Shown here piece after piece: positions 1 through 63,535 of a stretch of 64,000 bases of DNA. Below the pieces are notes generated by a model, which worked only from the letters and a program-made list of their open reading frames with translations, was not told where the DNA came from and searched no databases. The DNA is taken from assembly GCF_022045235.1 (NCBI RefSeq), contig NW_027266266.1:22940001-23004000 (forward strand), written 5' to 3'. This DNA comes from Haliotis cracherodii (taxonomy: Eukaryota). Position 1 is the first letter of the stretch, and every line of letters starts with the position of its first letter. The translations under genes were made by a program, and so were the position numbers.

Positions 1-364
1 ATTCAATATCAAGCCTTGCACTACTTACGGACTGCAGAGGGGTCTAACATAGGAATGATTCAGCCTCAAGCCTTCCACTACTTAATTGTGGACTGCAGAG
101 GGGTTGAGCATAGGAATGATTCAGTCTCAAGCGTTTCACTACTTATGGACAGCAGAGCGGTTGAGCATAGGAATGATTTAGTCTCATCCTTCCACTACTT
201 ATTGACTGCAGAGGGGGTGGACATCAGAATGATTCAGTATTAAGCGTTCCACTACTCATGGACTGCAAAGCGGTTGAACATAGGAATGATTTAGTATCAA
301 GCCTTCTGCTACTCACGGACTGCAGAGCGGTTGAACATAGGAATGATTCAGTATCAAGCCTTCT
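1..364. repeat. ~57-bp tandem array made of arylsulfatase copy-1 exon-2 end plus donor (>=6 units, runs off edge)
   Basis: Unit GGACTGCAGAGCGGTTGAACATAGGAATGATTCAGTATCAAGCCTTCCACTACTCAC; the rightmost unit is the coding exon end. Confidence 0.92.
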
Positions 365-1691
365 GTTGCCAGCTTGTCGATGTTGGGTGTGATCATATCG
401 GGGTTATGAAAGCCAATATCGTTCCATCCTGAAAATCGTTTAAAAATAGGATTCATACGGACAACCTTCATACTGCTATAATTGATTTTACTTTCAAATT
501 TAAAGGCGTTAGGTATGAAGATGAAATGTGTAACACCTAAACCTAATTCGGCACGGATTATACCACATTAATGTTAGGACAAACTAGCCTCTTCGTGGGT
601 CTGACTGCACCCATCGTCTTCGTCAAAATGGCCGACATGATACACGTGACGGAAGTGATTTCCGAAGTTGTTAATGGACCTGTGGCGGTTACATGTGTTA
701 TTCATCATCGATCATTTGGCCGATCGTTGAAAGGTGATTATAAAGATGTGTCAAATAGATACTAAGGTAAATCATAGATTGCTGTCAGTCAACATACGGA
801 TCGAGTCGCTACTACGATAGTATGGATACATGTACATTTTTCGTTTTGTTCAAATGGATTGGTCGTAGCGAGGGCATTCGTGAATGATCACGCAGTCAAA
901 ACTCTCTGACGATTCCCAATGTATGCTAACACGCTGTGTTCAAGATTATAGGATAAAAGTGATCAGAAACAACGCTTCTGTATGTATTCGTGCCAGGGAA
1001 TTCCCAGGGATTCCCCGAGGAATGTGTAAGAAGTCCGTCAGTGCTTTAAGAATACGGTCTCGTGAAAAACGTATGAACTTCAAATTGTGTCGTCCATACA
1101 CATATGAACGTCAATTTCGCGGTCATTTGACCGACCTCTCGTCCAATGGAAAAGCCGTATACCGTACTTAAACAGTTTCCCTCCATAAAGCTGACACTGA
1201 TGTAACTGAATGCTGTCCAACGCGACCGTGAACCCATTAAGAAAGATCTGGCATTGTTACATTAATTTTACACGCACAATCATAATATAACAGTCCTGGA
1301 AGGAATATTCTGTACGGAAATCAATACGAGATTTCCTTGTTAAATGATGTTCATTTATAAACCATGTAATGTGCAAAATGGAATTTATAATTTATGCTTT
1401 TGAAATGTACAAATTATTACTGCAATGATTGCCCAACAACCAGCAACGATTTCCTTTTTGACAGTGTGGGGAAATTACATATATCGAAATCATACCAAAA
1501 GTATCGCACATGTTTCTTTTGTATTGACTATTAAAGATAGTATTTTTTTTATGGAAGCATATTTACAAGAAATCAAACATACCGAGATCATCCGCCACGA
1601 TGAAGACAATATGGCGTAGACGTCCTGCTGCAGAAACTTCATCACAGAGGTTGATGATGACCCAAACTGTGCATAATAACTGGACAAACAT
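317..1691 (-). CDS. Arylsulfatase B-like gene, copy 1 (exons 1-2 only; continues beyond left edge)
   Basis: Exon 1 at 1691-1583 encodes [37 protein letters not shown] (signal peptide plus sulfatase DDLG; donor G|GTATGT). Exon 2 at 428-317 encodes [37 protein letters not shown] (acceptor TTTCAG, donor CC|GTGAGT). Nearly identical to exons 1-2 of the paralogue at 14191-12889. Confidence 0.9.
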
Positions 1692-2418
1692 CTCTCCTTC
1701 CGTGGACAGGAATTACAACTTGGTGTCCTATCTCCCCTGGAAAGTATGCCAGAGGTTTTATTTTTATCTCAAACAAGTCGCCTGTGACAAACTATCCGCA
1801 GCGCCAGCTGTCTGACCTGACGCAGGTCGTGAGTTGAGCTTTTGTTCCATTTTCCACAATACCCCTACTACCGTAAATATTCTACCGTTTCAAAATTTAT
1901 TAGCAACCGTCTCGGAGGCTCGAAACACAGTAGCGGCCGGCGAGAAAAGGGTTCTTATATTGAACTGCGCAGTTTATATTTCACACTTGTAGATACAACT
2001 TGCAAGCTTTTAGCATAAATAATTAAAAATAATTTCAAAAAATTAAAAGGAGATAATAAAGGACCCAAAAATAAATCAGGTCAAAAACATATCTGAAATT
2101 AATAGACCCCGGGTTCCGTGAGCATTCATTTTTTAGATTTCCAGGGCTTTTTTGCATTCATTGTTGTCTGGAAAGTTTGAAGATGAGTGGAACTAGTGGT
2201 TGATATTGTGAGCATCAAGCGACACTGGCTTGGTACGAAACGATACTAACTCCGCCATTTTACAGCTGACAAGTCGACATACATGATCTGGATAGTTTCT
2301 GGCGTGCTCAAGGAAGGTAACTCTGTAGGGCGAATTGCAGGCATGACAACCGCGAGTAAGTCAATATAGTACATGTACATGCAGTAGATACAACCAGAAC
2401 TAACATTTATATAACGAC

Positions 2419-2424
2419 TTTATT
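2419..2424 (-). terminator. Putative polyadenylation signal of arylsulfatase copy 2
   Basis: AATAAA on the - strand about 25 nt downstream of the stop codon. Confidence 0.55.
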
Positions 2425-5947: not shown

Positions 5948-8900
5948 GCCACGCTGGTACTGCTCACCCGTCAAACACAGTTCCGGTTTTCTGGAGACCG
6001 GATCCGTGCATGAATGCTGCTGCCCTCGTTCCCCCCTCGTACACAGTCACCTTGCCTCCTCGCAGGGGGTAATTGTTGCCGTGTTCGGTGATCCAGCCAC
6101 CATTCTGAAAGAAGGGAGTGAGTGAGTATAGTCTTACGCCGCTTGTAGCAATACACCAGCAATATCAAGGCGTGGGACACCAGAAATGGGCTTCACATAT
6201 CGTACCCATGTGGGAAATCGAACCCGGGTCTTTGGCGTGACGAGCGATCGTTTTAACTACTAGGCTACCCCACCGCCCCCCAGATAGAAGTTTACAATTA
6301 ATGTTTATTGACAAATACAAACATTATCAATGTTATTCCGCCGCACTCTGTAAAACGTATACGTAAACCTGGAATGCTATGACATCATGGTACAATGGAA
6401 GACATATAAATATTGATCATGTTTGATATTTAATTTAGGCGATATCATTTCGCTTGGCCAAATGGCACGTTCTTCTTTCCATTTAGGATTAAGAATTAAA
6501 AAAATGTTTATCAAAAAAGTATTCATTTCCGACATAAAACGTTATCAGTGTCAAGATGTCTGTTCGTTCTTACGTACTGAATTACACATAGAATTACCAT
6601 CTCTACATATAGAAAAGTATCTCTCCTACACGACATGCTTCAAATTAAAAAAAGGCACTTCGTAGATTTAGATGTTGAAGTCATAATGTACACATAGAGA
6701 CGGGCAGGTGGGGAAATATTACAAGAGAAGAGCGTTAGTGTTATTCCATAGCAGATATCTCGAGTGTGGAAGATAAAAAATACATTTTTGGTTTGTTTGT
6801 CCAGTTAGAGAGAAGCATCTACAGCCATCTGATATCAATGCTGTATTCTGACAAGTCCTGACCTCCCGATCCCGTTAGTCGCCTTTTACGACAAGCATGG
6901 GTTGCTGAAGGCCTATTCTACCCCGGATCTTCACGGGTCTGGTTTATTGTTTGTCATCGTACTCATGCCATCGTGTCACCACCAACAAATCAGTGCTGGG
7001 TAGTATGACGAACGCCATGCATGTTCATAATATCAACCATTGTTCCAGATTAAATTATTTACCAGCCGCTTTCGTTCAGCTGGAATATTGCTGACTGCGG
7101 CGTTAAACAACCAACACACAAAGAAAAACTGAAGTTGTTTAACAAACACTGGAAGGTGTCAACATATGTCAGACCCTCCGTGTGTTAAGATAAACTTGTG
7201 TGTGCATGTTTCCGCCTCCCTTTTTTCAAATACAGTAAACTACGGTTATAACGAACACGCTTATAACGAACTGACGGATATAACGAACTTACTTTTTTGG
7301 TCCCGACTATTTGCTGTAGTTATGCTGTATATATGCTTATAACGAACTACGGTTATAACGAACTAAAATTAGTAGTCCTTTTCAGTTCGTTATAACCGTA
7401 GTTTACTGTACCTGCATCCGTTATTTCTGAACATAATCGGGGGCGGTCGGGTAGCCGGTAGTGGTCAAAGCGTTCGCTCGTCACGCTGAAGACCCGGGTT
7501 CGATTCCCGACATGGGTACAATGTGTGAAGCCCATTTCTGGTAGCGGCGTAAAACCATACTCACTCTGAACGTAATCTTCGTTTGACATTTCATTTCCGA
7601 GATACGCTTCTTGCACACCAGATAGAACCCCAGTGAATAAATAATGTAATGGAAATAGCAGGTACGCTTCTACATCATGGTGATTTCGCGCATTGAGTGA
7701 GTGAGTGAGTGAGTGAGTATGGTTTTACGCCGCTTTTAGCAATATTCCAGCCTTATCACGGCGGGGGACACCAGAAATGGGCTTCACACATTGTACCCAT
7801 GTCGGGAATCGAACCCGGTTATTCGGCGTGACAAGCGAACTCTTTAAACATTTGGCTACCCGACCGACCACGATTTTGCACATTGAGGAAGTTTAGTCGC
7901 TGTTGGCTGTTATAATGGCGTAATAGGTGTTCCTTGTAATGATTCGATTCTTCCATTACAGAAAGTGTGCTGCTATCATGCAGGTGGAGCCTATCACTGC
8001 GCCTACTGAATGACAGATGGTATAAACTGATACTCACATCGGCAGTAAACAGAATCAGTGTGTCTTCCATTAATCCACTGTTTGTCAAGGCTTTTGTAAT
8101 GTTACCAATTGCGTCGTCAAGAGCTGAGACCATTCCTTGAAGCATGGAAATACCTATGACAACTACTGTTTGTTTGTTTGTTGTTTATACGCCGAAATAT
8201 TCCAGCTTTATGACAGCAGTCTGTAAATAATCGAGTCTGGACCAGACCATCCAGTGATTGACATCATGAACATCGATCAACGCAATTTGGATACGATGAC
8301 ATGCATCAACCAAGTTAGCAAGCCTGACCACCCGATCCCGTTAGTCGCCTCTTTCGACAAGCAAAGTCGCCTTTTACGGCAAGCATGGGTTGCTGAAGAC
8401 TACTGAGACCATTCCTTGAAGCAAGGAAATCAAGAACTCCATGAAAATATTATTTCTGCAAAATAAACTTGATATGCATATTTGAGTAACTGATTTAAAA
8501 GTAATCCGACATTCATTTTTTTAAATAACATCAAAGTCAATTGCATAATATGTATAGCTGTTTCACAGTTTGAAACTCAGAGATTTACTTTTTCAAAGCC
8601 AATTGAATAATTTTCCGACCATAGCAACAACTGATAAATAAGAAATATGAACTTTCTTGAGATATCTATTTCATACATACCACAATATTTACGACGACCT
8701 TCCGTCTTTACGTTCGGATACATTGCTTCATATTTTTCGGGAACCTTTAAAAATATGAAAAACATATAACAGGTACAGATATAACTTTTTGTCAAAAGGC
8801 CAGAAACAATACGAGTTAATGTCAGTAAGGAAGTATTACCTCTATGGGGGCGTGGACGGCTTGAAACGGCAGGTACAGAAACAACGGCCGGCTCTTGTCA

Positions 8901-11900
8901 TGACGCTCGATGATGCCGATTGCTTCATCAGCAAACCGATACTGAAACAGTGATGCTGAAACTATGATGCTGAAACAGTGATGCTGAAATTGGGATGCTT
9001 AAACAGTGATGCTGAAACTGTGATGCTGAAACTGTGATACCAAAACTGTGATGCTGAAACAGTGATGCTGAAACTGTGATGCCAAAACTGTAAGGCTGAA
9101 ACAGTGATGCCGAAACAGTGATGCCAAAACTGTGATGCTGAAACTGTGATGATGAAACAGTGATGCTGAAACTCTGATGCTGAAAAAGTGATGCCAAAAC
9201 TGTGATGCTGAAACTGTGATGCTGAAACAGTGATGCCAAAACTGTGATGCTGAAACAGTGATGCCAAAACTGTGATGCTGAAACTGTGATGCTGAAACTG
9301 TGATGCTGAAACAGTGATGCCAAAACTATGATGTTGAAACTGTGATGCTGAAACAGTGATGCCAAAACTATGATGCTGAAACAGTGATGCTGAAACTGTG
9401 ATGATGAAACTGTGATGCCAAAACTGTGATGCTGAAACTGTGATGCCAAAACTGTGATGCTGAAACTGTGAAGTGAACAGTGATGCCAAAACTGTGATGC
9501 TGAAAAAGTAATGCCAAAACTGTGATGCTGAACAGTAATGCCAAAACTGTGATGCTGAAATTGTAATGCCAAAACTGTGAAGCTGAACAGTGATGCTGAA
9601 ACAGTGATGCTGAAACTGTGATGCTGAAACTGTGATGCCAAAACTGTGATACCAAAACTGTGATGCCAAAACTGTGAAGCTGAACAGTGATGCCAAAACT
9701 GTGATGCTGAAAAAGTAATGCCAAAACTGTGATGCTGAACAGTGATGCCAAAACTTTGATGCTGAAAGAGTGATGCCAAAACTGTGGTGCTGAAACAGTG
9801 ATGCCAAAACTGTGATGCTTAAAGAGTGATGTTTAAAGAGTTTTAATGCCGATTCCAACAATATGATATATTATGACATGCCAGCTGAAAGAGGAAGAAC
9901 ACACAACAACGCAAATCGTAAACGTTCAAAGATTACGATCAAAATGTAGATTCGAACCCATGACCAGTGGATACTGGTACACCTAAGGGAAGAAACCATT
10001 GCTTAAATCGAATTGCGAAGCCTCGGACACCAAATATTATAACATTACAGGCTCTACACACCACAAGCATCCACAAAGCCATCTAAAAATACCCATAACC
10101 ATGTGCCATTGTAACCACCCGATCCTGAATAGGTTCTTGGTCGATACGTTACCGTTGAGTATGTGCCGTTGTCGGTCTTCTCGGGACTGGTGTTGTTGCG
10201 GAAGTCCAGGTAATCGAGAGTTGTGTGCGTGTAGTAGTCTTCCTGGGCGTTGTAGTAGCCGAAGAAGCTGTCAAAGCCACGGTACGTCGGGGTGCAATTC
10301 CAACTACAGAACCCAGTGTGCCACCTGGATCACACGACAGGGACAATGTAGCCTTGATACAGGTGGGGGACTTCTGCTGCTACTGATGCTTCCACTACTA
10401 CTACTGCTGCTGTTGTTGTTGTTGATGCTCCTGCTGCTGCTGCTGCGCCTTCTACTGACACTTCTACTACATCTGCTACTGCTACTGCATGATTTTAATC
10501 GTCAATGTTAACACCTTAACTGCCGGGCAAAAGAAAGTATACACCATGTCTGATGGTGGCTAAAGATGAAACAAACAAGAAATGGTTACTGGATGGGGAT
10601 ATGTTTCATACCTTACATAGTTGTTTTTTGGACCATAAGTTTGCACTGTTTTCGGCGACAGTAATGTTTTGACGTTTGTAATGTTTTGGTCAAATCCAAT
10701 TTTCAAAATGTATACTTTTACACGGGAGCTTATTGGGAACGACTACTACTAAACTGAAGGCTGTGGCGTAGCCTAGTGGATCAAGTGGTCAATCGTCACG
10801 CCAAAGCCCCTCAGTCGGGTCTTCTCGGCATGGATGCAATGTTTGCAGCACACTGTGGTTCTGCCGCAATATTTTTTCCAAGCGGTGTAAAATCCTACTC
10901 CCCTACTAACTACTATTGACTTGTTTTCCTTGAGTAAATGCTCGTATACATACTTCCCTATGATGTGTGTGGCATAGCCCAGCTCCTTCAATTTCTGCGG
11001 CAGGATCGTAATGTTCAGGGGCAGACAGACGGGCTGGTAATTCACAATAACCAGATGCTGTAAAAGAGGATTGTTCCGTGACATATATTTTACAGATTAC
11101 ACTTATATCATTATTCATCCATTTTTCAGAACGTTGTAACGGGGCGGTCTGGAAGCCTAGTGGTTAAAGCGTTCGCTCGTCACGCTGAAGACCCGGGTTC
11201 GATTCCCGACATTGGTACAATGTGTGAAGCCCATTTCTGGTGTCCCCCGCCGTGATATTGCTGGAATATTGCTAAAAGCGGCGTAAAACCGTACTCCCTC
11301 ACTCACTCAGAACGTTGTAACAGTTTGAATTCACATTCGCTCCACACACTAAAGATCCGGGTTCGATCCGCACATCTGTAAAACGTGTGAATCGCATTTC
11401 TGGTGTCCCCCGCCGAGATATGTCTTGAATATTGTTAAAAGCGGCGTAAAACCATACTCACTCACTTACTCGACGTGGTCAATGCCTTCAATGACAAATA
11501 GAGATTGTCGTCGGTCAAAATGCCCCCGTGAGGGGTCGCTGGTGGAATATGTCGACAGAACCAAATGCTTGTCGTATGAGTCGACTGAAAAGGATAGAGC
11601 TGTTATGTTGTGTGTGCCCCTGGCTTCTTATGTGTCAATGTACACCGAACGTGTGGATCGTTGTTCAAGCTATCAACCCCTTGTTTGCCTGGGTGTCGTT
11701 GTACAAAACAACCTTAGCGCTACGAATGTCGCAAGTCCATGTTAAGGTATGGGAGTAACGATCACCTAAGCGGTAGGATGGATTTGTACAACGGCACCCA
11801 GGTACAAGGTGAGGTGAGGTGTGTGTGGATGCTTGTACTAGTCCGGACTGATGCCGATTTATAGAACAGTCTCACTGAGATACCATGCCGCAGTTTAACA

Positions 11901-14191
11901 TGAATACCCCACTCAGACACAGTAAACTGACTCCGAGCCGACCAGTCCCTATTTTAGACCCTTTATGCCGAGCGCCAGACAGGGTAACAACAAGTACCAT
12001 CTTTTAACGTCTTTTGGTATGACGCGGTCGGGGATCGAACCTCGGACCTTCCCCTCTCCGGGTAGACCACGGTGGCGGTCTCCCAAGTACAAACCTTGAT
12101 AATCGATATAACTGGAATATCGCTGACTGCGTAAAACAACATTCACTCTTTCGGCACCACTCACCTGTAACCCCGTCTTGAAAGGGTAATAGCCAGACAT
12201 GAACGCACTTCTCGACCTGCGTGTAGGACATGTATAAATATACCACACAAAATAAGTTAAGGAACACCCGATTTGTTCTATAGTTAATTTACCATGCCAT
12301 GACAGGTGAAGTACAGTATTAGGACTTGAATCGGGTGTTCTTTACCTTACATTAGCATACATTGTAAACTATCGTCGTAAATCGCGAAGGCATGGCCAAC
12401 ACTGGTAACCGTTATACAAAATATATTCACCGGAATAAATCTTCATATGCCATAGTGTATCACCATAACTAGGGACTTGCTGAGATTCTGTACACAAAAT
12501 TGTCACCAGGGTCGCCGTTCAACGGATGAGTGAGGTATCTTTTTCTTTGGTGTCGTATATTAGGCTAAAAAATAAAAGTCTTGGTTCTCAGGCCATGCCC
12601 ACATCAACATAAAGTTCATTGCACTTTTCGTTTTTGCTTCCAATTTATATTTATTTTTTCCTGCATTGTGTTTAAGTATGAGGATTTTTATATTTTTTGG
12701 AAAATGGAAATAAAAACAAAACGTGCTGCAGACTTTATGATGATACGGGTGGTGCCTGAGGACCAAGACTGCACGGACTGCAGAGGGGGTGGACATAAGA
12801 TTGTTTCAGTCTCAAGTCTTCCACTACTCACGGACTGCAGAGCGGTTGGACATAGGAATGATTCAGTATCAAGCCTTCCACTACTCACGGACTGCAGAGC
12901 GGTTGGACATAGGAATGATTCAGTATCAAGCCTTCTGTTGCCAGCTTGTCGATGTTGGGTGTGATCATATCGGGGTTATGAAAGCCAACATCGTTCCATC
13001 CTGAAAATCATTTCAAAAGCTGAAATCATCTGTTCAGACAGATGATAATATACCACACTGATATCAGTGAGGTGCGCGTTCAAATACAAAGGCATCAGTT
13101 AAAATGTCTGCAATCGCTGATGGTATGGTGAATTACACAATTCCAATATAATTTCTAATTCAGCACAGATTATACCATATCATTGTTGGCCAAACGCTTC
13201 TTCGTTAGGCTTAATACAGTATTGCGCGTAGGTTCGAGTCACAGATTCGTGCCATGTACGCTTCAGTCTTCTCTCGCCGCGCCAAATTAGTAAACTTCTA
13301 CTAACTGCATCACTACGGGCCTTCTCAGTATGGACCGCCTCCGTGGTCTAGTGGTAGAGCGTCGGCCCGGAGAGCGGTAGGTCCGGGGTTCGATCCACAG
13401 CCGCGTCATACCAAAAGACGTTAAAAGATTGTACTTGTTGTTACCCTGTCTGGCGCTCGGCATTAAGGGGCTCGGAGTCAGTATTCTGTGTCTGAGTGGG
13501 GTATTCATCTTAAACTGCGGCGTGGTATCTCAGTGTGCTAGCACTATAAATTGGCATGCAGCCACACAAACACACACACGTACATGCATGTCGCTATATG
13601 AGTGCAATAATCTTGGACGCAACGTTAAACCCCATTACACCTCAGCTCACCTCACCTTCTCAATATAAGGTTGACCTTGATGTAACTCACTTAATAATAA
13701 AACTCTGGCATTAAAGGGCAAATTTTACAGGATCAGTCATAAATTATTCAAAATGATATACGATACTGCACCGAAGATTAATGAACATGTGACAAATCAT
13801 TCACTTGCAGAATAGAATGAAGTAATTTTAACCTGTGAATATATGCTAATAACTGATGTCGTATTTTATCCTCTGACTACAAAAGGTTTCATACATAAAA
13901 CGACGTTTAACTACTAGTATGTGTACATAGTGAGTTCACTCAATGGTTTCAGTGAATTGTCCGTACAGGAACACATGATATCCAGAAAAATGAAAATTCT
14001 CTTTATGAAATAGTGTAACGCTTGTTGAACAGTTTCCCAAATTGCAGCTTGGGGAAATTAAATTTTCGAATTCAAATCATACCGAGATCATCCGCCACTA
14101 TGAAGACAATATGGCGTGGACGTCCTGCTGCAGAAACGTCATCACAGAGGTTGACGATGACCAAAACTGTGCACAATAACTGGACAAACAT
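2449..14191 (-). CDS. Arylsulfatase B-like (ARSB/ARSI/ARSJ family) gene, copy 2, complete, 13 exons, ~481 aa
   Basis: Phase-consistent exons: 14191-14083, 13000-12889, 12216-12165, 11057-10954, 10324-10153, 8941-8840, 8744-8681, 8135-8038, 6104-5968, 5095-5037, 4116-3993, 3095-2959, 2624-2449 (1446 nt). Motifs: ADDLG, CSP|SR (formylglycine motif), [48 protein letters not shown]-terminal WSPGWC. Confidence 0.93.
2742..2882. repeat. GA-rich low-complexity tract
   Basis: (GA)n/(GAGT)n-rich tract in the last arylsulfatase intron. Confidence 0.8.
5907..5948. repeat. (TTG)n microsatellite
   Basis: Pure TTG run in an intron, about 20 bp from the donor at 5967. Confidence 0.95.
7233..7408. mobile_element. 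Tc1/mariner-pogo-type MITE (CAGT termini, TA TSD)
   Basis: TA|CAGTAAACTACGGTTATAACGAAC...GTTCGTTATAACCGTAGTTTACTG|TA with internal TATAACGAAC repeats; second copy at 61157-61331. Confidence 0.88.
8942..9835. repeat. 14-bp minisatellite ending exactly at an arylsulfatase 3' splice site (~60+ units)
   Basis: Units on the - strand are CATCAC(A/T)GTTTCAG and CATCACAGTTTTGG; the last TTTCAG is the acceptor of exon 8941-8840. Confidence 0.93.
10370..10490. repeat. Compound (CTG/CTA/TTG)n microsatellite
   Basis: Trinucleotide runs that produce a spurious poly-Leu ORF. Confidence 0.85.
11141..11306 (+). mobile_element. Short tRNA-derived SINE, family A (~165 bp), representative copy with 15-bp TSD
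   Basis: A box TAGTGG, B box GGTTCGATTCCC, (CTCA)n tail; TSD TCAGAACGTTGTAAC at 11126-11140 and 11307-11321. Other copies at about 6114-6280(-), 7440-7567, 7695-7870(-), 11335-11468, 20977-21132, 22125-22290, 31938-32105, 36395-36520, 44705-44878(-), 57997-58160, 59275-59400(-). Confidence 0.9.
12775..12936. repeat. 57-bp tandem array (3 units) made of arylsulfatase copy-2 exon-2 end plus donor
   Basis: Units start at 12775, 12832 and 12889; same unit as at 1-364. Confidence 0.92.
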
Positions 14192-28700: not shown

Positions 28701-31059
28701 GTGGCAAGAGTATGTGTGGCTGAGTGGTGAATCACCTAGGTGTGGCAAGAGCATGTGTGGCTGAATGGTGAACATCAATATGTGGCAAAAGTATGTGTGA
28801 GTGAGTGGTGAACATCAATATGTGGCAAGAGCATGTGTGACTTCATGGTGAACATCAATATGTGGCAAGAGTATGTGTGGCTGAGTGGTGAATCACCTAG
28901 GTGTGACAAGAGCATGTGTGGCTGAATGGTGAACATCAATATGTGGCAAGAGTATGTGTGAGTGAGTGGTGAATCACCTAGGTGTGACAAGAGCATGTGT
29001 GGCTGAATGGTGAACATCAATATGTGGCAAGAGCATGTGTGGCTGAGTGGTGAATCACCTAGGTGTGACAAGAGCATGTGTGGCTGAATGGTGAATCACC
29101 TAGGTGTGGCAAGAGCATGTGTGTCTGAATGGTGAACATCAATATGTGGCAAGAGCATGTGTGGCTGAGTGGTGAATCACCTAGGTGTGACAAGAGCATG
29201 TGTGGCTGAGTGGTGAATCACCTAGGTGTGGCAAGAGCATGTGTGGCTGAATGGTGAACATCAATATGTGGCAAGAGCATGTGTGGCTGAGTGGTGAATC
29301 ACCTAGGTGTGACAAGAGCATGTGTGGCTGAGTGGTGAAGCACCTAGGTGTGGCAAGAGCATGTGTGGCTGAATGGTGAACATCAATATGTGGCAAGAGC
29401 ATGTGTGGCTGAGTGGTGAATCACCTAGGTGTGACAAGAGCATGTGTGGCTGAGTGGTGAATCATCTAGGTGTGGCAAGAGCATGTGTGACTTCATTGTG
29501 AACATCAATATGTGGCAAGAGCACGTGTGAGTGAGTGGTGAACATCAATGTGTGGCAAGAGCATGTATGAGTGAGTGGTGAAACATCTAGGTATGGCAAG
29601 AGCATGTATGAGTGAGTGGTGAAACATCTAGGTGTGGCAAGAGCATGTGTGACTTCATGGTGAACATCAATGTGTGGCAAGAGCATGTGTGACTGAATGG
29701 TGAACATCAATATGTGGCAAGAGCATGTGTGGCTGAGTGGTGAAGCACCTAGGTGTGACAAGAGCATGTGTGAGTGTGTGTTGAAACATCAATGTGTGAC
29801 AAGAGCATGTGTGGCTGAGTGGTGAATCACCTAGGTGTGGCAAGAGCATGTGTGGCTGAATGGTGAACATCAATATGTGGCAAGAGCATGTGTGGCTGAG
29901 TGGTGAAACATCTAGGTATGGCAAGAGCATGTGTGGCTGAGTGGTGAAACATCTAGGTATGGCAAGAGCATGTGTGGCTGAGTGGTGAAACATCAATGTG
30001 TGACAAGAGCATGTGTGGCTGAGTGCTGAAATATCAATGTGTGACAAGAGCATGTGTGGCTGAGTGGTGAAAAATGTAGGTGTGACAAGAGCATGTATGA
30101 GTGAGTGCTGAAATATCTAGGTATGGCAAGAGCATGTGTGGCTGAGTGGTAAAACATGTAGGTGTGACAAGAGCATGTATGAGTAAGTGCTGAAATATCT
30201 AGGTGTGACAAGAGCATGTGTGGCTGAGTGGTGAAACATCAATGTGTGACAAGAGCATGTGTGTGGTGAAACATGTATGATGTAGGTTTGGCAAGAGCAT
30301 GTGTGATTTCATGATGAGGTGAGGTGAGGTGAAATTGGGTTTAACGTCGTGTCCAAGATTATTGCACTTATATAGCGACGTGCATTCACGTGTGTGTGTG
30401 TGTGTGGCTGCGCTGCGGCTGCTTGTACTAGTCCGGCCTGATGCGGATTTAAAGTGCTAGCTCACTGAGATACCATGCCGCAGTTCAACATGAATACCCC
30501 ACTCAGACACAGTATACTGACTCCGAGCCGACCCGTACTTGTTTTAGCCCCTTAATGCCGAGCGCCAGAAAGGGTAACAACAAGTACCATCTTTTAACGT
30601 CTTTTGGTATGACGCGGCCGGGGATCAAACCCCGGACCTTCCGCTCTCTGGGCGGATGCTCTACCACTAGACCACAGAGGCGGTCTGATTTCATGATGAA
30701 ACATCTAGCTGTGGCATTTTGACTCTATATTAAGACAGTTAAGTTTGCTATCATCACCAATGTATTAACATATGCCAATAAGTTGAAAGTATGTCATGAA
30801 TATGTTGTGAGACCTATGGCTTAAAATTAAGATGAAATAGACATCCATGACTTGGTGTACTTGCTGAGAACATGCCAAACTGTCATGAATATATTTTTCT
30901 GCATACAAGTATTGGACAATTGTGTCAGTAACATTGAATCAAGGTCAGTATATTGTGTGCTACAAATTGTTTAGGTTTTAGAGAAGTACATCTTTCTTTT
31001 TATTGTTCTTTCAGAGGAGGCCACAAGGAAAGGCAAGGCAGAGGAAGTCGAGCTGGCCA

Positions 31060-47600: not shown

Positions 47601-49577
47601 AAACGGATGAAAAGCATATGCAATATCTTGAATGGACTGTGACAGATGTGCCAAATCGTCCTGTGGCAGAGGTACTATGCTGGCTGGCTGCCGGCCACAT
47701 GGAACTCTGGGTAGGAGAGTGCATAAATTACTCCTGATTCATAAGCCATGAAACTTAAAAAAATAATTTTCATGACTGTCCGACAACAAGCAAGGACTCA
47801 CCATCAGCATCATAGTCAGAACAAATCTGGCATTTGAACCTAAAATATATGGATCCTTGCATAGAGTGGGAAATGGAGGACTGACTATGACCTACATCTT
47901 TTTTTTCTAAATGGTTTTGGATATCAACAACAATTTGAATGTCATGGCATATTGATAGTAACACAGCTCTGACAGGTGCTTGAGTACCTGACCAGGGGCA
48001 TCTTCCCGAGGCAAGGGAGTTAACTGACTACAAAAGTCCAGTTTCCACCCTTGTCGAACTAGGCTAGTATTATGGAGTAACATTTTGGCTGGACTAACGA
48101 GTCTATGCATAATCCAATCAAAATCGCACACCGAAAACGAAATCTGGTTCGTAAAGTGTCATACAGATTTCGGTCGACTGCAGGATTTGCAAAGCATGTG
48201 CACCGCTAACTTGTTGTCAACAGATATTTTCTAAATCTTTTCATGCTTTTAATCAAGGTGTTCACATGATTTGATGCACTTCGCGATGTAAGACTCGTTT
48301 TATCACAATATAGATATTGATTATCAATCAGATCGTCTTGACTGGACTGTTTGAAGCAAATGCAAGTGATACGAAAGGTTGAATCTGATTGGTCAATAGG
48401 CGAGGCATTGAAAGGACATAACTCGTAATAGCCACTGGTGGCGCTACGATCGAGCCCAGGAATTCCAGCCTAGTTCGGCAAGGGTGGAAACTGGACTTTT
48501 ATAGTCAGTTAACTCACTTGCCTCCGGAAGATGAACCAGGGGAGATAACTTACATCTCCATTTATCAAACAATCCATTTGCAGACACTGAAGAAGAAATG
48601 ACACAGTGTCTAGACACATTTTCACTTTGATGAGGTGAATGAAAAAAAAAGTTTATTGTGTGTCTTATTATCATGGAGATCTCAAACCAGAATCCGGGTC
48701 GGGAATGGAGACAGATGTACTTGGGTTCATTTTACTCTACTCGTAAAAAAAACTGTATGGAACAAGTTGAAAAGTGAATAGATAATCATATTGCACACTT
48801 ATCACTTTGTTATCTGCAAAGGAGGTTGTCAGTGTCATTTCTAGAACATCACTCTCCATGATATCATGATAGAATGGAGATAAAACTAATCTGTAATAAA
48901 TTGAGATATATATCATCATGATACGCTGCAAATGATATTTTAAATACAAATATAAAATACAATAGTGATTGAGTTAGTTTTATCATGTTAATTTAATACT
49001 TCTTTGAGACATATTTCAGCAAAGGGTGCGAATTTTGTGTGTGAGGAAAGCCCATAGCGATGCAGGTCTTAGATGTGAACCACTTTTAAAAAACCATGAG
49101 CATAGGTATGGTGCAGACAAACCAAGCAACATAATCAAGATAAATCTGGGATTCAAACCCACAACTCAACTCTGCCAGCTAATCGTAGCAAACCAGATGG
49201 CTGAGACACCCATACCCAAAAATCTGCAAGAATAAACATTTAACTAAATGTGCGATTTAATCTTAAAATGAAGATAATCAGATATACTGTTCTAAATATT
49301 GAAATAAAAATATATATTTGACACTTGAGTTTGCCATTTCAAAATACCATATGGTTCTCTTTAGCTAAGTAAGCTTGCTTCGACAATGGCCATGACTAAG
49401 TTGTTTACCTATTGGTACGGAGTGTTTCTTGCACAACGTGACGCCATGCTCTGCAGCAATTCCATTCACCATCAAGGATGTGTGTGTGATGACACCTTTT
49501 CTGAAGCAGTCCACAAGTCCTTCATTCCTCTCTTTGCTGTAGCCTAAGTCGTCACCAGTTATCACGAGAAGCTTCAT
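41660..49577 (-). CDS. YDJC: YdjC-family carbohydrate deacetylase, 5 exons, ~296 aa
   Basis: Exons 49577-49409, 47166-47027, 45911-45812, 44480-44303, 41963-41660 (891 nt). Motifs LVITGDDLGY, TSLMVNG, GLHFNISEG, HVDGHQHAHIFPG, ELMAHPGY, GPDDFSQSEAREHE. Confidence 0.92.
43018..43302 (-). mobile_element. tRNA-derived SINE family G (expanded head)
   Basis: TGGCCCAGTCATCTAAGGCG..GGGTTCGAATCCC head and (CTCA)n tail. Diverged copies at about 4265-4530, 38145-38390, 49030-49210(-); head fragments near 32350 and 36040. Confidence 0.7.
44939..45460. mobile_element. MITE family D
   Basis: TSD GAAAAACTA / GAAAAAACTA. Confidence 0.9.
46284..46975. mobile_element. MITE family D, diverged, with internal insertion
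   Basis: Degenerate TIRs and recognisable internal sequence. Confidence 0.7.
47999..48533. mobile_element. MITE family D
   Basis: TSD GACCAGGGG/AACCAGGGG. Confidence 0.92.
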
Positions 49578-50017
49578 AGTGTATGTTTTCGCTTCAATTT
49601 ACTGTTTTATATATTCGTTTAACAAAATGTCGTCTTTGAAACATTGGCCTTGACCTGTTAACTGATAAGCAAGATAATGCCCTCATTTAGATACCTTTAG
49701 TTATTAGTTTTAGAGTTAATTCCCCTGTTCACTCTCCAGTATGCGAAAGTAGAAAAATACTTCCGGTAAAAATACAGATTGAATAACGAATTTCAGCATT
49801 TGAAAAGTATTTTTCGTACAATGTAGCAAGGAAGCATCAACGTCCACATCTGATCAAGAAAATTTGCGTTGTCACCTTTAGAATGTTGTATTGGTACTAC
49901 TATTCCATGCAATTATCAATACAACTGCAAGATCGAGAAACCTCAATTTTCAGTTTAAGCACAAATTTTGGTGATTTCCAATTTTGAATGAACCCACGCA
50001 CATTGTAGGTTTTCAAA
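49578..50017. promoter_or_regulatory. Probable bidirectional promoter YDJC/BCAS2
   Basis: Divergent ATGs 440 bp apart with no TE insertion. ETS-type ACTTCCGG at 49759-49766; YY1-like AAAATGGC overlapping the BCAS2 ATG. Confidence 0.7.
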
Positions 50018-51532
50018 ATGGCTGGAGAAGTTGTTGTCGATGCTTTGCCGTATTTCGACCACGGTTATGATGAGCCTGGCGTAAGAGAAGCCGCGATTGC
50101 TTTGGTAGAAGAAGAGACAAGGCGATACAGACCAACAAAAAATTATCTTGACTATCTCCCGCCTCCAATTTACAACTCATTTGAAACAGAAATGATGAAA
50201 AATGAAGTCGAACGTTTGCAGGTGGGTATCAATTCCTAAATAGTGTTTCTAGGGCAACAAAACACTTTACCGGGCGCAGATTATGGTGTTAATTAGCTGG
50301 CGGCTATGGCTCTCGCTGATCTCGCTTCCTCTTTGATGTCATCCCGGTCGCATATATAAACAAGAATAAGAAAAAGTTGGTCGACCGATCGGCACTGCAT
50401 CAGAAAATCAGAAAACAAAGCAGCTCACTACTAATCAAGTACGGATGTTAAGACAAATAATGATAGTTTGTTGATGTCAGCACTGGGCAACAATGCAGTT
50501 TACCGGGCGCAGTCTGAGCTCTACCATCCACTCAATTACCACGCTATAGTGTTACCGCTGTCTCGCTATACCATTACCGTGCCTCACGCTCAAGTGACTC
50601 TCGCTTCACTATCCAACACCTGTTTTCAGTCTTAGGTAAACTTACACATCTTTACGATCCAACACCCGTTTTTGGTCTTAGGGAAACTTACACAACTTTA
50701 CGATCCAACACCCGTTTTCGGTCCTTAGTGTTAGCTTGGTTTGGGCAAGGGTTAGCCATAATTTCTTACCTTTTCATTTTAAATCGTTAATCCAGTTAAT
50801 CCGATTGGTCTGTCATGTTGACATTAACAGTGGTGGGTGTGGTTTCAAGAAAAGATTAATGGTAGAGCGGACAGTGACGTCAAACGGATGCGCAATTCAC
50901 TGTTTTCTGAATTACGCATGCTTGTTTATAGGGTGCTAATCACCCGTTAATTGAACACTGATTACATGTGATAGCACTTGAGGTCCAGTGGTAGAGTGTC
51001 GGCTAATTAACGCATTGATTTTAATGAGATTGCTCTCAATGCTGTCCTTAACTCTTGGATCCCCTTTTAGATTAAGCACTCTTTTATAATCAATAGGATT
51101 AGTAACCCCTTTCTGATCAAACACCATTTACAATCCTTGGGGTTGGGTACCCCTTGCCAGTCATACACACCTGTTTGGTCCTTAGTAATAGTATTAGTTG
51201 TGAGGTAGGGTACGGGTTAGCTATTGTTTTTGACAAATGAACCCAATGTAATTTGAGGAAATTATTGACCACTTGGTAAATGAGCACTAATTATTTGTGA
51301 TAGTGCCCAGGGTAGAGTGTTGACTGATAAGATTAACACGTTAAGCCAGCTCGGCTGATTGAATTCCCAATAGGTGTAGATGAACATGATGAAGTGCAAT
51401 ACTCCAATCTGTAGGCCTGTGTTTCTCTGGTATTGTCATATGCCAATTGGAGGTGAGGTGAGGTGAAATGAGGTTTAACATCGCGTCCAAGATTATTACA
51501 CTTAATAATATAGCGACGTGCATACACGTGTA

Positions 51533-51564
<32 letters not shown>

Positions 51565-54500
51565 GCTGCTTGTACTAGTCCTGACTTATGCCGATTTATA
51601 GTGCTAGCCCACTGAGATACCATGCCGCATGATTATCTCACTCAGACACAGTAAGGACTCCGAGCCGACCAGTCCTTGTTTTAGCCCCTTAATGCCGAGC
51701 GCCAGACAGGGTAACAACAAGTACCATCTTTTTACGTCTTTTGGTATGATGCGGCCAGGGATCGAACCCCAGACCTTCCGCTCTGGGCGGACGCTCTACC
51801 ATGAGACCACAGAGGCGGTCTACGCCAATTGGAATATGATAGTCTCTCTGATGGAACTTTTGAGTTTCTGGAGACAAAATTAGGTACAAGAATTAGCACT
51901 TTAGTGTGACATAACTAGTTTTATATGTGCACAGGGTAAACTGCACACTTACATTCTCTTTGTAGATTTCTCTCATGTTTCCTGCACTATTGTATTGCCA
52001 CACACCCATTTAATATTGTAGTAACCACAAATTTACATTTTGTAGTTCAGATGTCGCGATATAGGTGTATATCGATACAGAAGCCACGATACAATACATA
52101 TATCGATATTGCATATTTGACATTTTGTGCAGAAAACCCAGTCGTTTGACTGAAAATAGAGTCCATAGACTCGCTCATACAGGTAAAGAGGGACAACTGA
52201 CTAGTACTTATCAACATGGCACATAAGTCAAGTCAACTATTGTGTCTGAGAAAATAATAAGAAACAAACAAGTTAGCATACTGTATTATGACCGGCAGCA
52301 TGGAAAAGCTGGCCAGTCTTCTTTCAAATACGAAACCAGTATTTAGGAATTACAAAATAGTTTGTACTTGCTTATTGATATCAGCGTGAGATATGGGGTG
52401 AAATGTGAATGCCAAATTAAATGTATCGGTTATCGTATCGTGCAAACTTTGCAGGTTATGCACCAGTGAATCGTGACATCACTATTTTGTAGTCTATAAT
52501 TATTTAGCCTATGGACAATGACTATAAAAGAAGTTCTATTCCAAAAATTAGGGGTGAAACTAAATGTCAGTGCACCGATGCATCATGAGTTGATCCTTTT
52601 TTTTGTGTATCAATACAAGATGATAATCTTGCTGAATAAATTACTTACTACTTATCACTCACTTAATAACACCACCCCCTCCCCTTAAGCATTTTCGTCA
52701 GTCAAATATTGCAAAATTTGTTGTAGTTAACATTTTAAGTTCACAACTAAAACAAACGCTGCAGACATGTGTCTACAGATAGCTTTTCCTTTTGAACCTG
52801 CTCTGAAATATTTATAGTCATGGAGTTTCCACAGGATTGCCGATTGACCAATCAGAATCGAATATTTCCCTAATTCATTCATTCCCTAATGGTTAACCAC
52901 AAGAAGACTAATCTGTCATCCTCTCTATAATCAGTACTATTTAGTCATGGTGAACATTATGGTTGCTAGACATGGTTAGACTTGCAGTGTTAGATTATGA
53001 CATGAAGGTCAATGGGTCCTTGTCATTATGGTCATTACCCTAATATTTGAAATGCTTAGATTCCCTAGATTCAAATACTATAGCTCAGCTTAGTTCCTTG
53101 GTTCTAGGTTAGTCAGCACCACGACATCTTAAGATCTGCAACATTTTGGGCTTTCCTCCCTTCAAACTGACCCACTGTGTTATAACTGAAATACTTTTCA
53201 AAACAGTATTACAAACTCACACCCTCAAAGACCCCAGGACCCCTATCAACACTGTAACACTGGAAATGTTGAAAAAAGTTTTGATGTTGTAGGCTCGTCT
53301 TCCAATGGAAATGATGAACATGAAGCGGTATGAACTACCAACACCAGCAGCCGGCAAGATGACGGACATCTCTGCGTGGACGGAGTGTCTGGAGAACTCC
53401 CAGGCTCAGCTGGAGCACCAGGCTCTGAGGATCCTGAACCTCGACCTCATGCAGGAGTATGGCTCCAGCGCCTGGAAGATGTACAATGGTGTGCTGTCAC
53501 ACATGTTGGAGCAGGCTCAGAAGCAACTCCAGGTGAGCACAGCTTGAATCAATAGAGGGATAGTTCAGAAATGGACATGATATAACTAATGTATAAACAT
53601 GATACCCATGATCAAGATATTATGTAACTATTAATCACTGCTAAGTGGCATTGTTTAAAGTTGATTTATATTTCTTTAGAAAGTTTTCTGAGGGAATTTC
53701 TTTTTCTGTGGCACTGGTGCTGTTGACTTCCTGAACAATTTACAGTTTCAGTGTTAAACAATATACACTCCACTATAACTGGGTTAATCAGTGTGTGTTA
53801 TAACAGTTTCAGTGTTAGACTGCTGTGTCAGTGTGTGTTAGACAATATACACTACACTGTAACTGGGTTAATCAGTGTGAGTTACTACAGTTGTAGTGTT
53901 AAACAATATACACTACACTATAACTGGGTTAATCAGTGTGTGTTACTACATTTTCAGTGTTTAACAATATACACTTCACTATGACGTGGTTAATCAATGT
54001 AAGTTACTACAGTCGTAGTGTTAGACAATATACACTACACTATAACTGGGTTAATCAGTGTGAGTTACTACAGCATTGTACAGTTGTAGTGTTAAACAAT
54101 ATGCACTACACCATAACTGGGTTAATCAATGTGAGTTACTACAGTTGTAGTGTTAGACAATATACACTATGACTGTATGCACGTTGCTATATGAGTGCAA
54201 TAATCTTGGACACAACGTTAAACCCAATTTCACCTCACCTCACCTCTGTGTATGTTTAATATTTTTAATTGGAGCATCTCGGTAGAAAGACAACCGGCCA
54301 CCATTTTGTAATGATGTGTAATGTTGTGTACAACAACTTCTTTACTTGCTCATAAATCGCCGTGAAAGCCAAGATTTAATCATAGGAAAGAAGGTTTTCT
54401 TGGTGAGAAGTTCTAAAATTTTCAGAGCCCTGCTCAGTGGCTACATGACCTCAACCATTTAGTCGTAGGCCAATTAGTTGGAGACGAGCCATTAACTTTA

Positions 54501-54776
54501 AAAGGAGCAAGCCTTGCTGGCTACATACAAATTTATTGTTCAGTCTAACCCTGGTTATTGAGACCTTTTTCTTACTGTACGCTCTAGGACCTGCGCAAGA
54601 AGATCCAGGAGATCAACTGGCAGCGCAAGAATGAGCAGAGTGTTGCCGGGAGCAAGCTTGAGCAGCTCGAGTCTAGCTGGGTGGGGCTGGTCAGTAAGAA
54701 CTACGAGATTGAGCGAGCGTGTGCCGAGGTCGAGAAGGAGATCCAGGAGATACAGCAGAGGCAGGGCAAGAGATGA
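50018..54776 (+). CDS. BCAS2: Pre-mRNA splicing factor SPF27/BCAS2, 3 exons, ~210 aa
   Basis: Exons 50018-50221, 53293-53532, 54588-54776, all phase 0. [78 protein letters not shown]. Confidence 0.95.
50611..50730. repeat. ~46-bp direct repeat, ~2.5 units, BCAS2 intron 1
   Basis: ATCCAACACC(C/T)GTTTT..GTCTTAGG.AAACTTACACA.CTTTACG repeated. Confidence 0.75.
53740..54172. repeat. 61-bp minisatellite (~7 units), BCAS2 intron 2
   Basis: GTGTTAGACAATATACACTACACTATAACTGGGTTAATCAGTGTGAGTTACTACAGTTGTA; 61-bp spacing at 53845/53906/53967/54028. Confidence 0.85.
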
Positions 54777-60274: not shown

Positions 60275-60340
<66 letters not shown>

Positions 60341-62495
60341 CTGCTTGTACTAGTCCCGATGCCGATTTATTGTGCTAGCTCACTGATAAACCATACCGCA
60401 GTTTAACATGAATACCCCACTCAGACACAGCATACTGACTCCGAGCCGACCCGTACTTGTTTTAGCCCCTTAATGCCGAGCGCCAGACAGGTAACAACAA
60501 GTACCACCTTTTAACGTCTTTTGGTATGACGCGGCCGGGAACCGAACCCCGGACCTTAAGCTTTCCGGGCGGACGCTCTACCACTAGATCACAGAGGCGG
60601 TCTACTACTACTACTACTACTACTACTAGTAGTAGTAGTAGTAGTAGCAGCTGATACAACATACAAACTATGGTATGGCTATTTGCAAGTTTAACTGCAG
60701 GTGACGATGCCGGCTTCCAGATGGGCGCCTACAACAACACGGCCTGCAAGACGCCAAACTTCGACAAGCTGGCCGCCAGGAGCGTCGTCTTCAAACATGG
60801 CTACACCTCCGTCAGCAGCTGCTCGCCAAGCAGGTGAAGGCAGGATTTCCTTTCCGCAGTCATGGCTGTTATAATTTGCAAATGTCCCTTGGTGTAGCAA
60901 TGGAACTTGCCAGTGTCCAGGCTCGTGTATTTACAGGTATTTTCCTGAGTGCGGCAAACAGAACAGAAGGTTCATCTTACCACGTAATGTGGGAGTGTCT
61001 CAAACATGTCTACACCTCCGCCAGTAGTTGTTCGTACAGCAGATGACCTCATCTCTCTTCATATATATCCTTGGCAATAAGCTGCATAACGCGCCTTTGT
61101 ATGGATTATGCCGTGTCAACATTAACCATCAGTCAATAACGATATACATGTATGCACAGTAAACTACGGTTATAACGAACTCAAATAGACCACTAGTTTT
61201 AGTTCGTTATAACGGTAGTTCGTAATGGGCATATATACAACATCTATACAGCAAATGGCCGGAACCAAAAATTATGTCCGTAATATCCGTCAGTTCGTTA
61301 TAAGCGTGTTCGTTATAAACTGATTTTACTGTACTCTCCCATTTGTGGTGAGGTGAGTTGAAATGGGGTTTAAAAATCAAGTAAAGTGAAAAAAAAATGA
61401 TTGCGATCTTGTAGCGAATGTCAATTGTGCCAGATATATTAAGTCAATTCCCGAAAGATAAAATATCTAAATATTCGTAGAAAGTATTTACATGTGCAAG
61501 TGCTGAAGTCACACGCTCCGTAATTGGATTCAAAAACAAAATATTACTTTATATTTATATATATTTATATATTTATATTTGGGGCGTGGCCTCACATTGC
61601 TCAGTCTTTGAAATGACCTTGATCTTGACATTGTGAATAATTTAAATAACAATTGATTGCCGTAACGAGCTTTTTACGACTAACATCCGTGTTGTCCTTA
61701 CATACATGGCATACATCTCTGCCTCATGGCATTCATTCACCTGTTGAAGGAGCATGTACTCCGAAACGTTGTGTTCCTCATAATAGTGAGTGTTTATGGT
61801 TTTACGCCGCTTTTAGCAATATTCCAGCATTATCTGGCTGTCTGATACTACAATAGTTACGTGTATGTGATATGGGAGCGTAATCAAAATTCGCCGTCAT
61901 TCGTTTGAAGTTCAAACATGGCAGAAATAGGTCGAGAAGCGCGGTAACCACTTCACTAATCTAGCCATATTTCGCAATGTACACCGAGATACACGATGTT
62001 ACAGCTGAGATGATGAGGAGATGATGGCTATAATTTTGATTTTGCGCACTCAATGTTTCACATCTTAGATCACAGTTGAAAAGGGTATCTCTATGGCCCC
62101 GTGGCACTCAGGGAGTGTGAAATGTCAGGGACCATCTAGAGGGTTAATGTAGAATCGACTAAAATGAACCCAAAGTGAAGACAATGCGTGAGTTATCCTT
62201 CCTTCCATGACTTGGAAGATGCTGATTCTATCATCTACTGGTTTGCCTGACCAAGACGCGATTATACACTGGCCGCCGGGATATAGCTGGATTATTGCTG
62301 ACGAAGGCGTGAAACAGTATTCACTCATTCACATGTTAGAGCTCATGTTTGTTTCTTCTAGGTCCGTGTTGCTGACTGGCCTTCCCCAGCACCAGAATGG
62401 GATGTTTGGTTTGCATCAGGACCCGCATCATTTTAACAGCATGGACTCGGTCCGGGCACTTCCTACTATCCTAAGCAATGCCGGGATCAGAACAG
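59764..62495 (+). CDS. SGSH: N-sulphoglucosamine sulphohydrolase (sulfamidase), exons 1-3; continues beyond right edge
   Basis: Exons 59764-59857 (signal peptide, RNVLLIYG), 60701-60833 ([31 protein letters not shown]) and 62362-62495 ([26 protein letters not shown]). These are typical SGSH motifs. Confidence 0.9.
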
Positions 62496-63535
62496 GTACA
62501 CACAGAGACAAAAACACACACGGACATATACGTTACCTTAGTAACGCAACGGGTACACATACGGACAAATACGTCACCTAAGTAACGCAACGGTACACAC
62601 ACGGACAAAGACGTTACCTTAGTAACGCAACAGATACACACACGTACAAAGACGTCACCTTAGTAACGCAACAGATACACACACGTACAAAGACGTCACC
62701 TTAGTAACGCAACAGGTACACACACGTACAAAGACGTCACCTTAGTAACGCAACAGATGCACACACGTACAAAGACGTCAACTTAGTAACGCAACAGGTA
62801 CACACACGTACAAAGACGTCACCTTAGTAACGCAACAGATACACACACGGACAAAGACGTCACCTTAGTAACGCAACAGGTACACTCACGTACAAAGACG
62901 TCACCTTAGTAACGCAACAGATGCACACACGTACAAAGACGTCACCTTAGTAACGCAACAGATGCACACACGTACAAAGACGTCACCTTAGTAACGCAAC
63001 AGATACACACACGTACAAAGACGTCACCTTAGTAACGCAACAGGTACACACACGTACAAAGACGTCACCTTAGTAACGCAACAGATACACACACGGACAA
63101 AGACGTCACCTTAGTAACGCAACAGGTACACTCACGGACAAATACGTCAACTTAGTAACGCAACAGATACACACACGTACAAAGACGTCAACTTAGTAAC
63201 GCAACAGATACACACACGTACAAAGACGTCACCATATTAACGCAACAGATGCACACACGTACAAAGACGTCACCTTAGTAACGCAACAGATGCACACACG
63301 TACAAAGACGTCACCTTAGTAACGCAACAGATGCACACACGTACAAAGACGTCACCTTAGTAACGCAACAGATGCACACACGTACAAAGACGTCACCTTA
63401 GTAACGCAACAGATACACACACGTACAAAGACGTCACCTTAGTAACGCAACAGATACACACACGTACAAAGACGTCACCTTAGTAACGCAACAGATACAC
63501 ACACGTACAAAGACGTTATCTTCGTAACGGAACAA
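62470..63535. repeat. 41-bp tandem array (~24 units) derived from SGSH exon-3 end plus donor
   Basis: Unit CCTTAGTAACGCAACAG(A/G)TACACACACGTACAAAGACGTCA resembles the junction CCTAAGCAATGC[CGGGATCAG]AACAG|GTACACACAGAGACAAA. Confidence 0.88.

Follow-up and report, generated by a model that had tools for sequence, protein, structure and literature searches.

We analysed a 64-kb window of the abalone Haliotis cracherodii genome (NCBI RefSeq assembly GCF_022045235.1, contig NW_027266266.1, positions 22,940,001 to 23,004,000 of the forward strand), in which tandem arrays begin or end at the splice junctions of several genes. The window is this whole stretch of DNA, and positions are counted from its first nucleotide. 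The arrays correspond to repeats known elsewhere as 'mirages', and most of them can be shown to have arisen by duplication of the junctions themselves. The assembly amounts to 1.18 Gb in 80 contigs. Gene content was established by reading of the open reading frames (ORFs), Pfam searches and tblastn searches with a related GLE1 protein, the exons being searched singly, by reference. The best relative of GLE1 is the Haliotis asinina protein XP_067685527.1, with 95% identity over the last exon. Six genes were found:

Approximately 1581-1691 and 318-428, minus strand: two exons of arylsulfatase paralogue 1.
14191 down to 2452, minus strand: arylsulfatase paralogue 2, 13 exons, in tandem with paralogue 1.
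16757-37346, plus strand: GLE1, at least 11 exons.
41663-49598, minus strand: a YdjC-like gene.
50009-54773, plus strand: BCAS2.
59719 to beyond the window, plus strand: SGSH.

Arrays were detected with Tandem Repeats Finder (TRF) over the window, and those of at least 60 bp with a period of at least 8 were counted. A preliminary description of this DNA had placed six arrays at exon boundaries, among them the longest four of the window. TRF recovers all six at the positions named as well as their rank, and in each of them the real splice junction is the first or the last copy. With periods of 14, 41, 41, 57, 57 and 59 bp and 2.9 to 64 head-to-tail copies, they are of minisatellite size. Both boundary types are hit, with five donor arrays and one acceptor array. 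The arrays had been assigned to four genes of three unrelated families. However, arylsulfatase and SGSH both belong to the Pfam family Sulfatase (PF00884) and are therefore not unrelated, which corrects the statement to two families plus GLE1. The junction arrays, including a 24-bp array that is absent from the preliminary description, and two single-copy relics are the following:

1-363, minus strand: donor array of arylsulfatase paralogue 1, 57 bp, at least 6.3 copies inside the window (TRF).
12772-12935, minus strand: donor array of arylsulfatase paralogue 2, 57 bp, 2.9 copies (TRF).
8938-9831, minus strand: acceptor array of arylsulfatase-2 exon 6 (8840-8941), 14 bp, about 64 copies (TRF).
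8403-8430, minus strand: single acceptor relic of arylsulfatase-2 exon 8.
21851-22370, plus strand: 24-bp minisatellite whose start lies about 20 nt past the donor of the small GLE1 exon 21770-21829 (TRF).
28150-30716, plus strand: GLE1 donor array, 41 bp, at least 53 copies (TRF core 28154-30305).
33316-35145, plus strand: GLE1 donor array, 59 bp, 31 exact 59-nt units with no indels (TRF and register reading).
60997-61046, plus strand: single decayed copy of the SGSH exon 2 tail (exon 60787-60833) followed by GTGA.
62493-63535, plus strand: SGSH array immediately downstream of the exon 3 donor (exon 62362-62492), 41 bp, about 25 copies (TRF 62514-63534).

The unit of the 59-bp array consists of the last 57 nt of the GLE1 exon 33265-33372 plus GT. 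The original intron picks up again after the last GT, and therefore the seed duplication ran from -57 to +2 relative to the junction. This duplication turned the working donor CAG/GTATCC (the slash marking the splice junction) into CAG/GTAAGG, which is closer to the consensus (33372-33378). The old donor context remains only past the last unit (35143-35151). The units are 96% alike, and variant units recur in blocks, 13-17 units apart. At one synonymous site, the boundary copy has the exon codon GCA, versus GCG or GTG in all 30 intronic copies. Together these features point to an array that grew by duplication of blocks of units, its boundary copy escaping homogenisation, as in the mirages of amphioxus (PMC3087553).

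The first unit of the GLE1 41-bp array is the tail of the exon 27898-28169, and the unit takes in the donor and no fewer than 23 nt of exon tail. The units, 85% alike, fall into two subfamilies in which the donor is kept or lost, and the array, older than the 59-bp one, stops 8 nt past a donor-like site. Beyond the TRF core, decayed copies and a tRNA-derived short interspersed nuclear element (SINE) extend it to approximately 30716. This SINE, at approximately 30318-30682, lies inside the array, with a 14-nt target duplication of array sequence. The 24-bp array is likewise interrupted by a tRNA-derived SINE, at approximately 22126-22293. Thus, both arrays are older than these SINE insertions. 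The exon next to the 24-bp array was revealed only by tblastn with the H. asinina GLE1 protein. The unit of this array is intron-only, without exon sequence; it abuts the donor and lacks the combination of exon sequence and splice signal.

On the minus strand, the 57-bp unit combines 47-49 nt of arylsulfatase exon 2, among them the catalytic Cys codon, with 8-10 nt of intron. In both paralogues, the exon 2 tail serves as the first unit (exons at about 318-428 and about 12889-12999, respectively), and the Pfam Sulfatase match of paralogue 2 stops at position 51 of the hidden Markov model (HMM), which is the exon end. The array of paralogue 1 extends about 300 bp past the left edge of the window, with copies down to C3:22939699 in the genome search. 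A common origin had been proposed for the two 57-bp arrays (given as 1-364 and 12775-12936), and they do share one origin; the array is confined to the two tandem paralogues, in diverged form and with different copy numbers. Approximately 18 other sulfatase loci of the genome match the exon part only, without the array, in DNA searches. As for the 14-bp array, its last unit stops exactly at the TTTCAG/ acceptor of exon 6, and it comprises 31 TTTCAG and 22 TTTTGG units. Between the relic of the exon 8 acceptor and the real acceptor (8133), 270 nt further downstream, there is SINE-like sequence.

In SGSH, the decayed junction copy described at 60991-61046 is confirmed by a local alignment matching at 41/51 positions (score 50 versus 17 +/- 2 for shuffles). 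It lies 163 nt into the intron, and its donor has changed from GT to AT. The unit of the SGSH 41-bp array contains a donor motif and matches the junction over about 5 nt of exon and about 9 nt of intron. We regard this array as junction-anchored, and its derivation via a 9-bp deletion is plausible. As a separate observation, the arylsulfatase donor that carries the 57-bp array (318 / 12889) is located at position 51 of the Sulfatase HMM and the relic-bearing SGSH donor (60833) at position 53. Thus, the array- or relic-bearing donors of these two distant members of one family are nearly homologous junctions beside the C-x-P-x-R motif.

We then compared each mapped donor (-50 to +10) with the downstream intron and each acceptor (-30 to +40) with the upstream intron, using shuffles as controls. 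Seven junctions have intronic copies at z = 12-50. They are those of arylsulfatase-1 exon 2 (z = 41, copy spanning -47 to +9), arylsulfatase-2 exon 2 (z = 38, -47 to +10), the exon 6 acceptor (z = 19, -30 to +4) and exon 8 (z = 12, -18 to +10) of the same gene, the GLE1 exons preceding the 59-bp array (z = 50) and the 41-bp array (z = 20, -23 to +10), and SGSH exon 2 (z = 15, -47 to +4). When the queries were run against the wrong-side introns, 0 of 47 exceeded z = 3.5. In five proven arrays or relics, the unit carries either 23-57 nt of exon tail with the GT donor or an acceptor with the exon head, and the arrays thus derive from their own splice junctions. It had been claimed that the units contain the splice site. 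Register reading and the junction scan show units with both exon-terminal sequence and splice signal for the GLE1 59-bp and 41-bp arrays, both 57-bp arrays, the 14-bp array and the SGSH relic. An exon share is uncertain for the SGSH 41-bp array, which shares only about 15 nt around the donor, and absent from the intron-only 24-bp array.

Searches of the whole genome (1.18 Gb) with the units of the 59-bp, GLE1 41-bp and SGSH 41-bp arrays returned their own loci only, and the 57-bp array occurs only in the two paralogues. The units are also unrelated to each other, as previously noted, and the junction arrays thus represent independent events. Abundant SINEs in these introns might suggest that a dispersed satellite or transposable element landed beside the exons. 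Nevertheless, the units are private to their loci and hold exon sequence of their own gene wherever a junction origin was shown; such an element is therefore excluded for the arrays searched, and we give this explanation next to no credence. It is also very improbable that the arrays result from mis-assembly, by collapse or expansion of repetitive reads. Their lengths, 0.16-2.6 kb, are far below those of long reads, and the assembly has only 80 contigs. Furthermore, the substitutions among the units of the 59-bp array show higher-order structure, SINEs with target duplications sit inside two arrays, the 57-bp array is present in diverged form in both paralogues, and a similar pattern recurs at unrelated loci.

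The position of the arrays relative to the coding sequence was deduced from the H. asinina GLE1 protein. In tblastn alignments, this protein is continuous from the exon ending at 28169 into that starting at about 31012, and from the exon ending at 33372 into that starting at 35421, with a 19-residue segment present once. The protein thus joins the exons exactly at the first donor of the 41-bp and 59-bp arrays, which are therefore intronic. Similarly, the sulfatase catalytic motif C-S-P/S-R is continuous only if the first donor is used. Read-through of the first units meets a stop within 1-10 codons, and there is an in-frame stop in the first unit of every donor array. A coding repeat, which we also considered, is ruled out by these stops. 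The exon-proximal splice site, that is, the first donor, is therefore likely to be the productive one in this animal. The coding exons are left intact and the expansion lies in the introns for all the junction arrays, as had been stated, and no exon-internal arrays were found in the window by TRF and ORF reading.

The arrays had also been presented as rows of decoy splice sites, an apt description of those whose units have kept their signals. The proportion of decoy donors kept varies between arrays:

GLE1 59-bp array (youngest): GT in 30 of 31 units.
SGSH 41-bp array: 5 GT versus 17 AT (ACAGGT versus ACAGAT).
GLE1 41-bp array: 27 donors kept versus 21 lost (CTAGGT versus CAATAT or CAATGT).
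Arylsulfatase paralogue 1: 1 of the 5 visible downstream donors kept, 4 of 5 changed from GT to AT at a CpG.

This series suggests that decoy donors disappear with array age. It also bears on a possible selected function, in which decoy arrays would be retained for a benefit, with retention biased towards junctions. Such arrays might strengthen the definition of a weak exon by recruiting U1 or U2AF, prevent premature polyadenylation, or modulate expression via unproductive splicing and nonsense-mediated decay. The improvement of the GLE1 donor by the duplication is consistent with such a role, as are the age of the 57-bp array, old enough to be common to two paralogues, and the link between intronic minisatellites and splicing decisions in Caenorhabditis elegans (PMC4039745). 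Nevertheless, older arrays lose their donors, in part through simple CpG decay, which has the appearance of a neutral process or of selection acting against decoys, and both units and lengths are idiosyncratic. We thus consider a selected function unlikely.

Next, we asked how frequently arrays lie at junctions. In the window, 7 of the 11 arrays are junction-anchored, counting the 24-bp array at 21851, and they represent 6 of 10 independent events. The four others are a low-complexity run, a SINE dimer and two arrays in BCAS2 introns. The latter two are the clearest non-junction arrays of the window, lying 300-400 nt from any exon:

50604-50728: BCAS2 intron minisatellite, 46 bp.
53835-54169: BCAS2 intron minisatellite, 61 bp.

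As an independent sample, we used nine multi-exon Cpn60/TCP1 chaperonin genes of the same genome, which were picked before inspection and cover 127 kb. TRF detected 14 arrays in these genes. Seven of them start or end no more than 20 nt from a junction, their terminal copy being the genuine splice site, and their flanking exons are supported by HMM matches or Pfam. Three are donor-side and four or five acceptor-side, the uncertainty coming from an eighth array discussed below. The donor-side arrays have private units of 41, 25 and 22 bp and the acceptor-side ones of 46, 22, 33 and 16 bp. A rough scan of the chaperonin genes with exon ends revealed nothing beyond the arrays already found, one of its matches being a SINE. 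The seven arrays belong to CCT/HSP60 genes on six other chromosomes, at the following positions in the extracted loci (TRF):

L040: 5075-5500 and 9675-10907.
L042: 7419-8042 and 8470-8927.
L044: 4144-4566.
L050: 6621-7238.
L038: 4789-4877.

If seeds were uniformly distributed in non-exonic DNA, 9-14% of the arrays (about 12%) would be expected to straddle or abut a junction. Under this null model, P = 3e-4 to 3e-3 for the window and 8e-8 to 1e-4 for the chaperonin genes, and approximately 1e-6 to 2e-5 for both combined. Mirages are present at about 5-12% of the examined junctions, roughly 1 in 10. Thus, the statistics support a process that favours junctions, acting at the birth of the arrays or on their retention.

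The preliminary description had offered either a junction-targeted process, for which R-loops, co-transcriptional breaks or RNA-templated repair were suggested as candidates, or survival bias. The preference for junctions stands, but survival bias alone does not account for it. According to the latter explanation, duplications occur uniformly, with no junction preference, and those straddling junctions are merely the only harmless exon-containing ones. A survival filter is real, as every array of the window spares the exon and lies in the intron, and exon-internal arrays are absent. Nevertheless, duplications deep in introns or in intergenic DNA are equally harmless and have a far larger target, so that 9-14% of junction arrays would be expected where we observed 6/10 in the window and 7-8/14 in the chaperonin genes. 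The equal excess in the latter, which were chosen beforehand, argues in the same direction. A filter that removes exon-internal duplications cannot enrich junction arrays over deep-intron arrays, and pure survival bias is therefore rejected as the sole cause; we hold it to be distinctly improbable.

The explanation that we favour, and consider quite probable, is that the arrays are mirage minisatellites born from junction duplications, with junctions being favoured for birth or retention in this genome. The process would start with a short tandem duplication of 14-59 bp, with one breakpoint no more than about 10 nt from the splice junction. What is duplicated would be an exon tail and its donor, an acceptor and the exon head, or intron sequence right after the donor motif. 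We infer that the array would then grow inside the intron by unequal exchange, slippage being another possible route, while the exon-side copy would be held by purifying selection outside homogenisation. Gene function would be kept because splicing would use the exon-proximal site, whether first donor or last acceptor, and would take out the array in full as part of the intron. Use of a decoy donor would lead to an in-frame stop within the first unit.

Relative to the junction, the ends of the exon-tail copies fall at +2, +4, +8, +8, about +7 and +10, the starts of the three intron-only arrays at -3, +7 and about +10 to +20, and the ends of the acceptor units at -5 to +10.

Some points weigh against our interpretation. 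The enrichment rests on 25 arrays in 191 kb, with partial exon maps and a simple uniform-seed null, and the 20-nt threshold was chosen after inspection of the data. The eighth chaperonin array, a 41-bp array of an HSP60-like gene, abuts a junction only if decayed copies are counted, and its flanking exon was not confirmed by Pfam. For the SGSH 41-bp array, the exon-tail query remained below z = 6 in the junction scan, and an exon origin is not significant. Lastly, one seed breakpoint is found at -3 to +10 in every junction array examined, but this regularity concerns about eight arrays and was noticed post hoc.

A more specific possibility, which we put forward tentatively, is that splice junctions are germ-line mutational hotspots in abalone. 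A lesion coupled to transcription or splicing would occur within about 10 nt of the splice site, and its repair, by templated fill-in or end-joining, would duplicate the adjacent 14-60 nt. Candidates for this lesion are processing of an R-loop whose end coincides with the U1 or U2AF footprint, and nicking where a polymerase has paused. The clustering of breakpoints at -3 to +10 would fit a zone prone to breakage at the splice-site footprint, from which templated duplication would proceed in either direction. If this holds, the hotspot would amount to an imprint of the splicing machinery at the DNA level, and introns of abalone and amphioxus alike would have in it a general source of growth and perhaps also of sliding or gain.

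Whatever their origin, the arrays inflate introns by kilobases of private repeats. With tens of perfect decoy splice sites per gene, they make a natural test bed for the rules of splice-site choice. Gene predictors and short-read mappers can be expected to stumble at array-bearing exon ends, and for abalone genetics the arrays will probably prove to be hypervariable markers. As the survival of harmless duplications is insufficient to explain the arrays, they point to a junction-linked mutational or retention bias, which is measurable genome-wide in this chromosome-level assembly.

Two observations were made elsewhere in the assembly. At C74:4486-5433, on the minus strand, the whole kinesin motor HMM (1-327, E = 9.6e-93) is matched in a single frame that contains 18 TAA and 2 TAG codons. 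The frame resembles an intronless gene written in a genetic code of the ciliate type, which suggests that the abalone assembly includes a small contig from a contaminant or symbiont. At C12:64.58-64.96 Mb, one set of myosin-head exons (HMM 229-379, 376-436 and 430-531) is repeated in tandem at least 14 times, which represents a large tandem cluster of myosin heavy-chain genes or alternative exon sets.

The abalone arrays had been presented as though they might be new, but their kind is already known. Tandem repeats across exon-intron boundaries were named 'mirages' in the Adh3 gene of amphioxus (Canestro et al. 2002, as cited in PMC3087553), for which length polymorphism and somatic instability have been shown. 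Further amphioxus mirages are found in the globin genes BflGb6 and BflGb9 (PMC3087553) and in the PGBD5 and troponin C genes (PMC3902484). They occur at 5' and 3' boundaries, have units of 10-160 bp, keep many AG/GT sites, are spliced normally and are unstable in length, and their mechanism was called unclear (PMC3087553, PMC3902484). As in amphioxus, the abalone units span the boundary, donors and acceptors are both affected, and the boundary copy stays outside homogenisation. In contrast, the host here is a vetigastropod, and its arrays are dense and longer, reaching 53 copies and 2.6 kb. Our literature searches found no genome-wide study of mirages and no report of them in molluscs.

A second precedent is the 37-bp variable number tandem repeat (VNTR) of human F7 intron 7. 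Its first unit spans the donor of exon 7, it has 6-8 units, and its pseudo-donors are silent because the most upstream of the identical donors is chosen by 5'-to-3' scanning (PMC1557585). By analogy, the same rule would explain how the 59-bp array of GLE1, with 30 further donors, can be tolerated. Unlike this VNTR, a single locus with 6-8 units in a genome for which no high frequency of such arrays is reported, the abalone arrays reach tens of units and occur at unrelated loci.

The arrays also recall models of intron gain by tandem duplication and introns made of tandem arrays (Rogers 1989, Zhuo et al. 2007 and Gao and Lynch 2009, as cited in PMC3087553; potato RdRp, PMC4974935). As in these models, a duplicated AG/GT segment yields extra usable splice sites, which are raw material for new or shifted introns. 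However, the models start from a duplication within an exon that creates a new intron, whereas the abalone intron was pre-existing and has only become larger. None of the exons is interrupted by an array in the manner of Rogers-type gain, and the exons on either side of the enlarged introns are joined at the same residues in the protein of H. asinina. That junction arrays lead to intron gain or sliding remains a model.

Lastly, the intronic minisatellites of C. elegans (PMC4039745) and the polymorphic 27-bp intron minisatellite of an abalone TSSK1-like gene, whose copy number varies between individuals (PMC6905558), are gene-private and intronic like the arrays of this study, but they were not described as junction-derived. 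The abalone arrays are therefore a known kind of repeat in a new lineage, dense enough there for a preference for junctions to be measured. Mirages had so far been a curiosity known from a few amphioxus genes; their presence at about a tenth of the junctions in a mollusc means that the process is not confined to cephalochordates.

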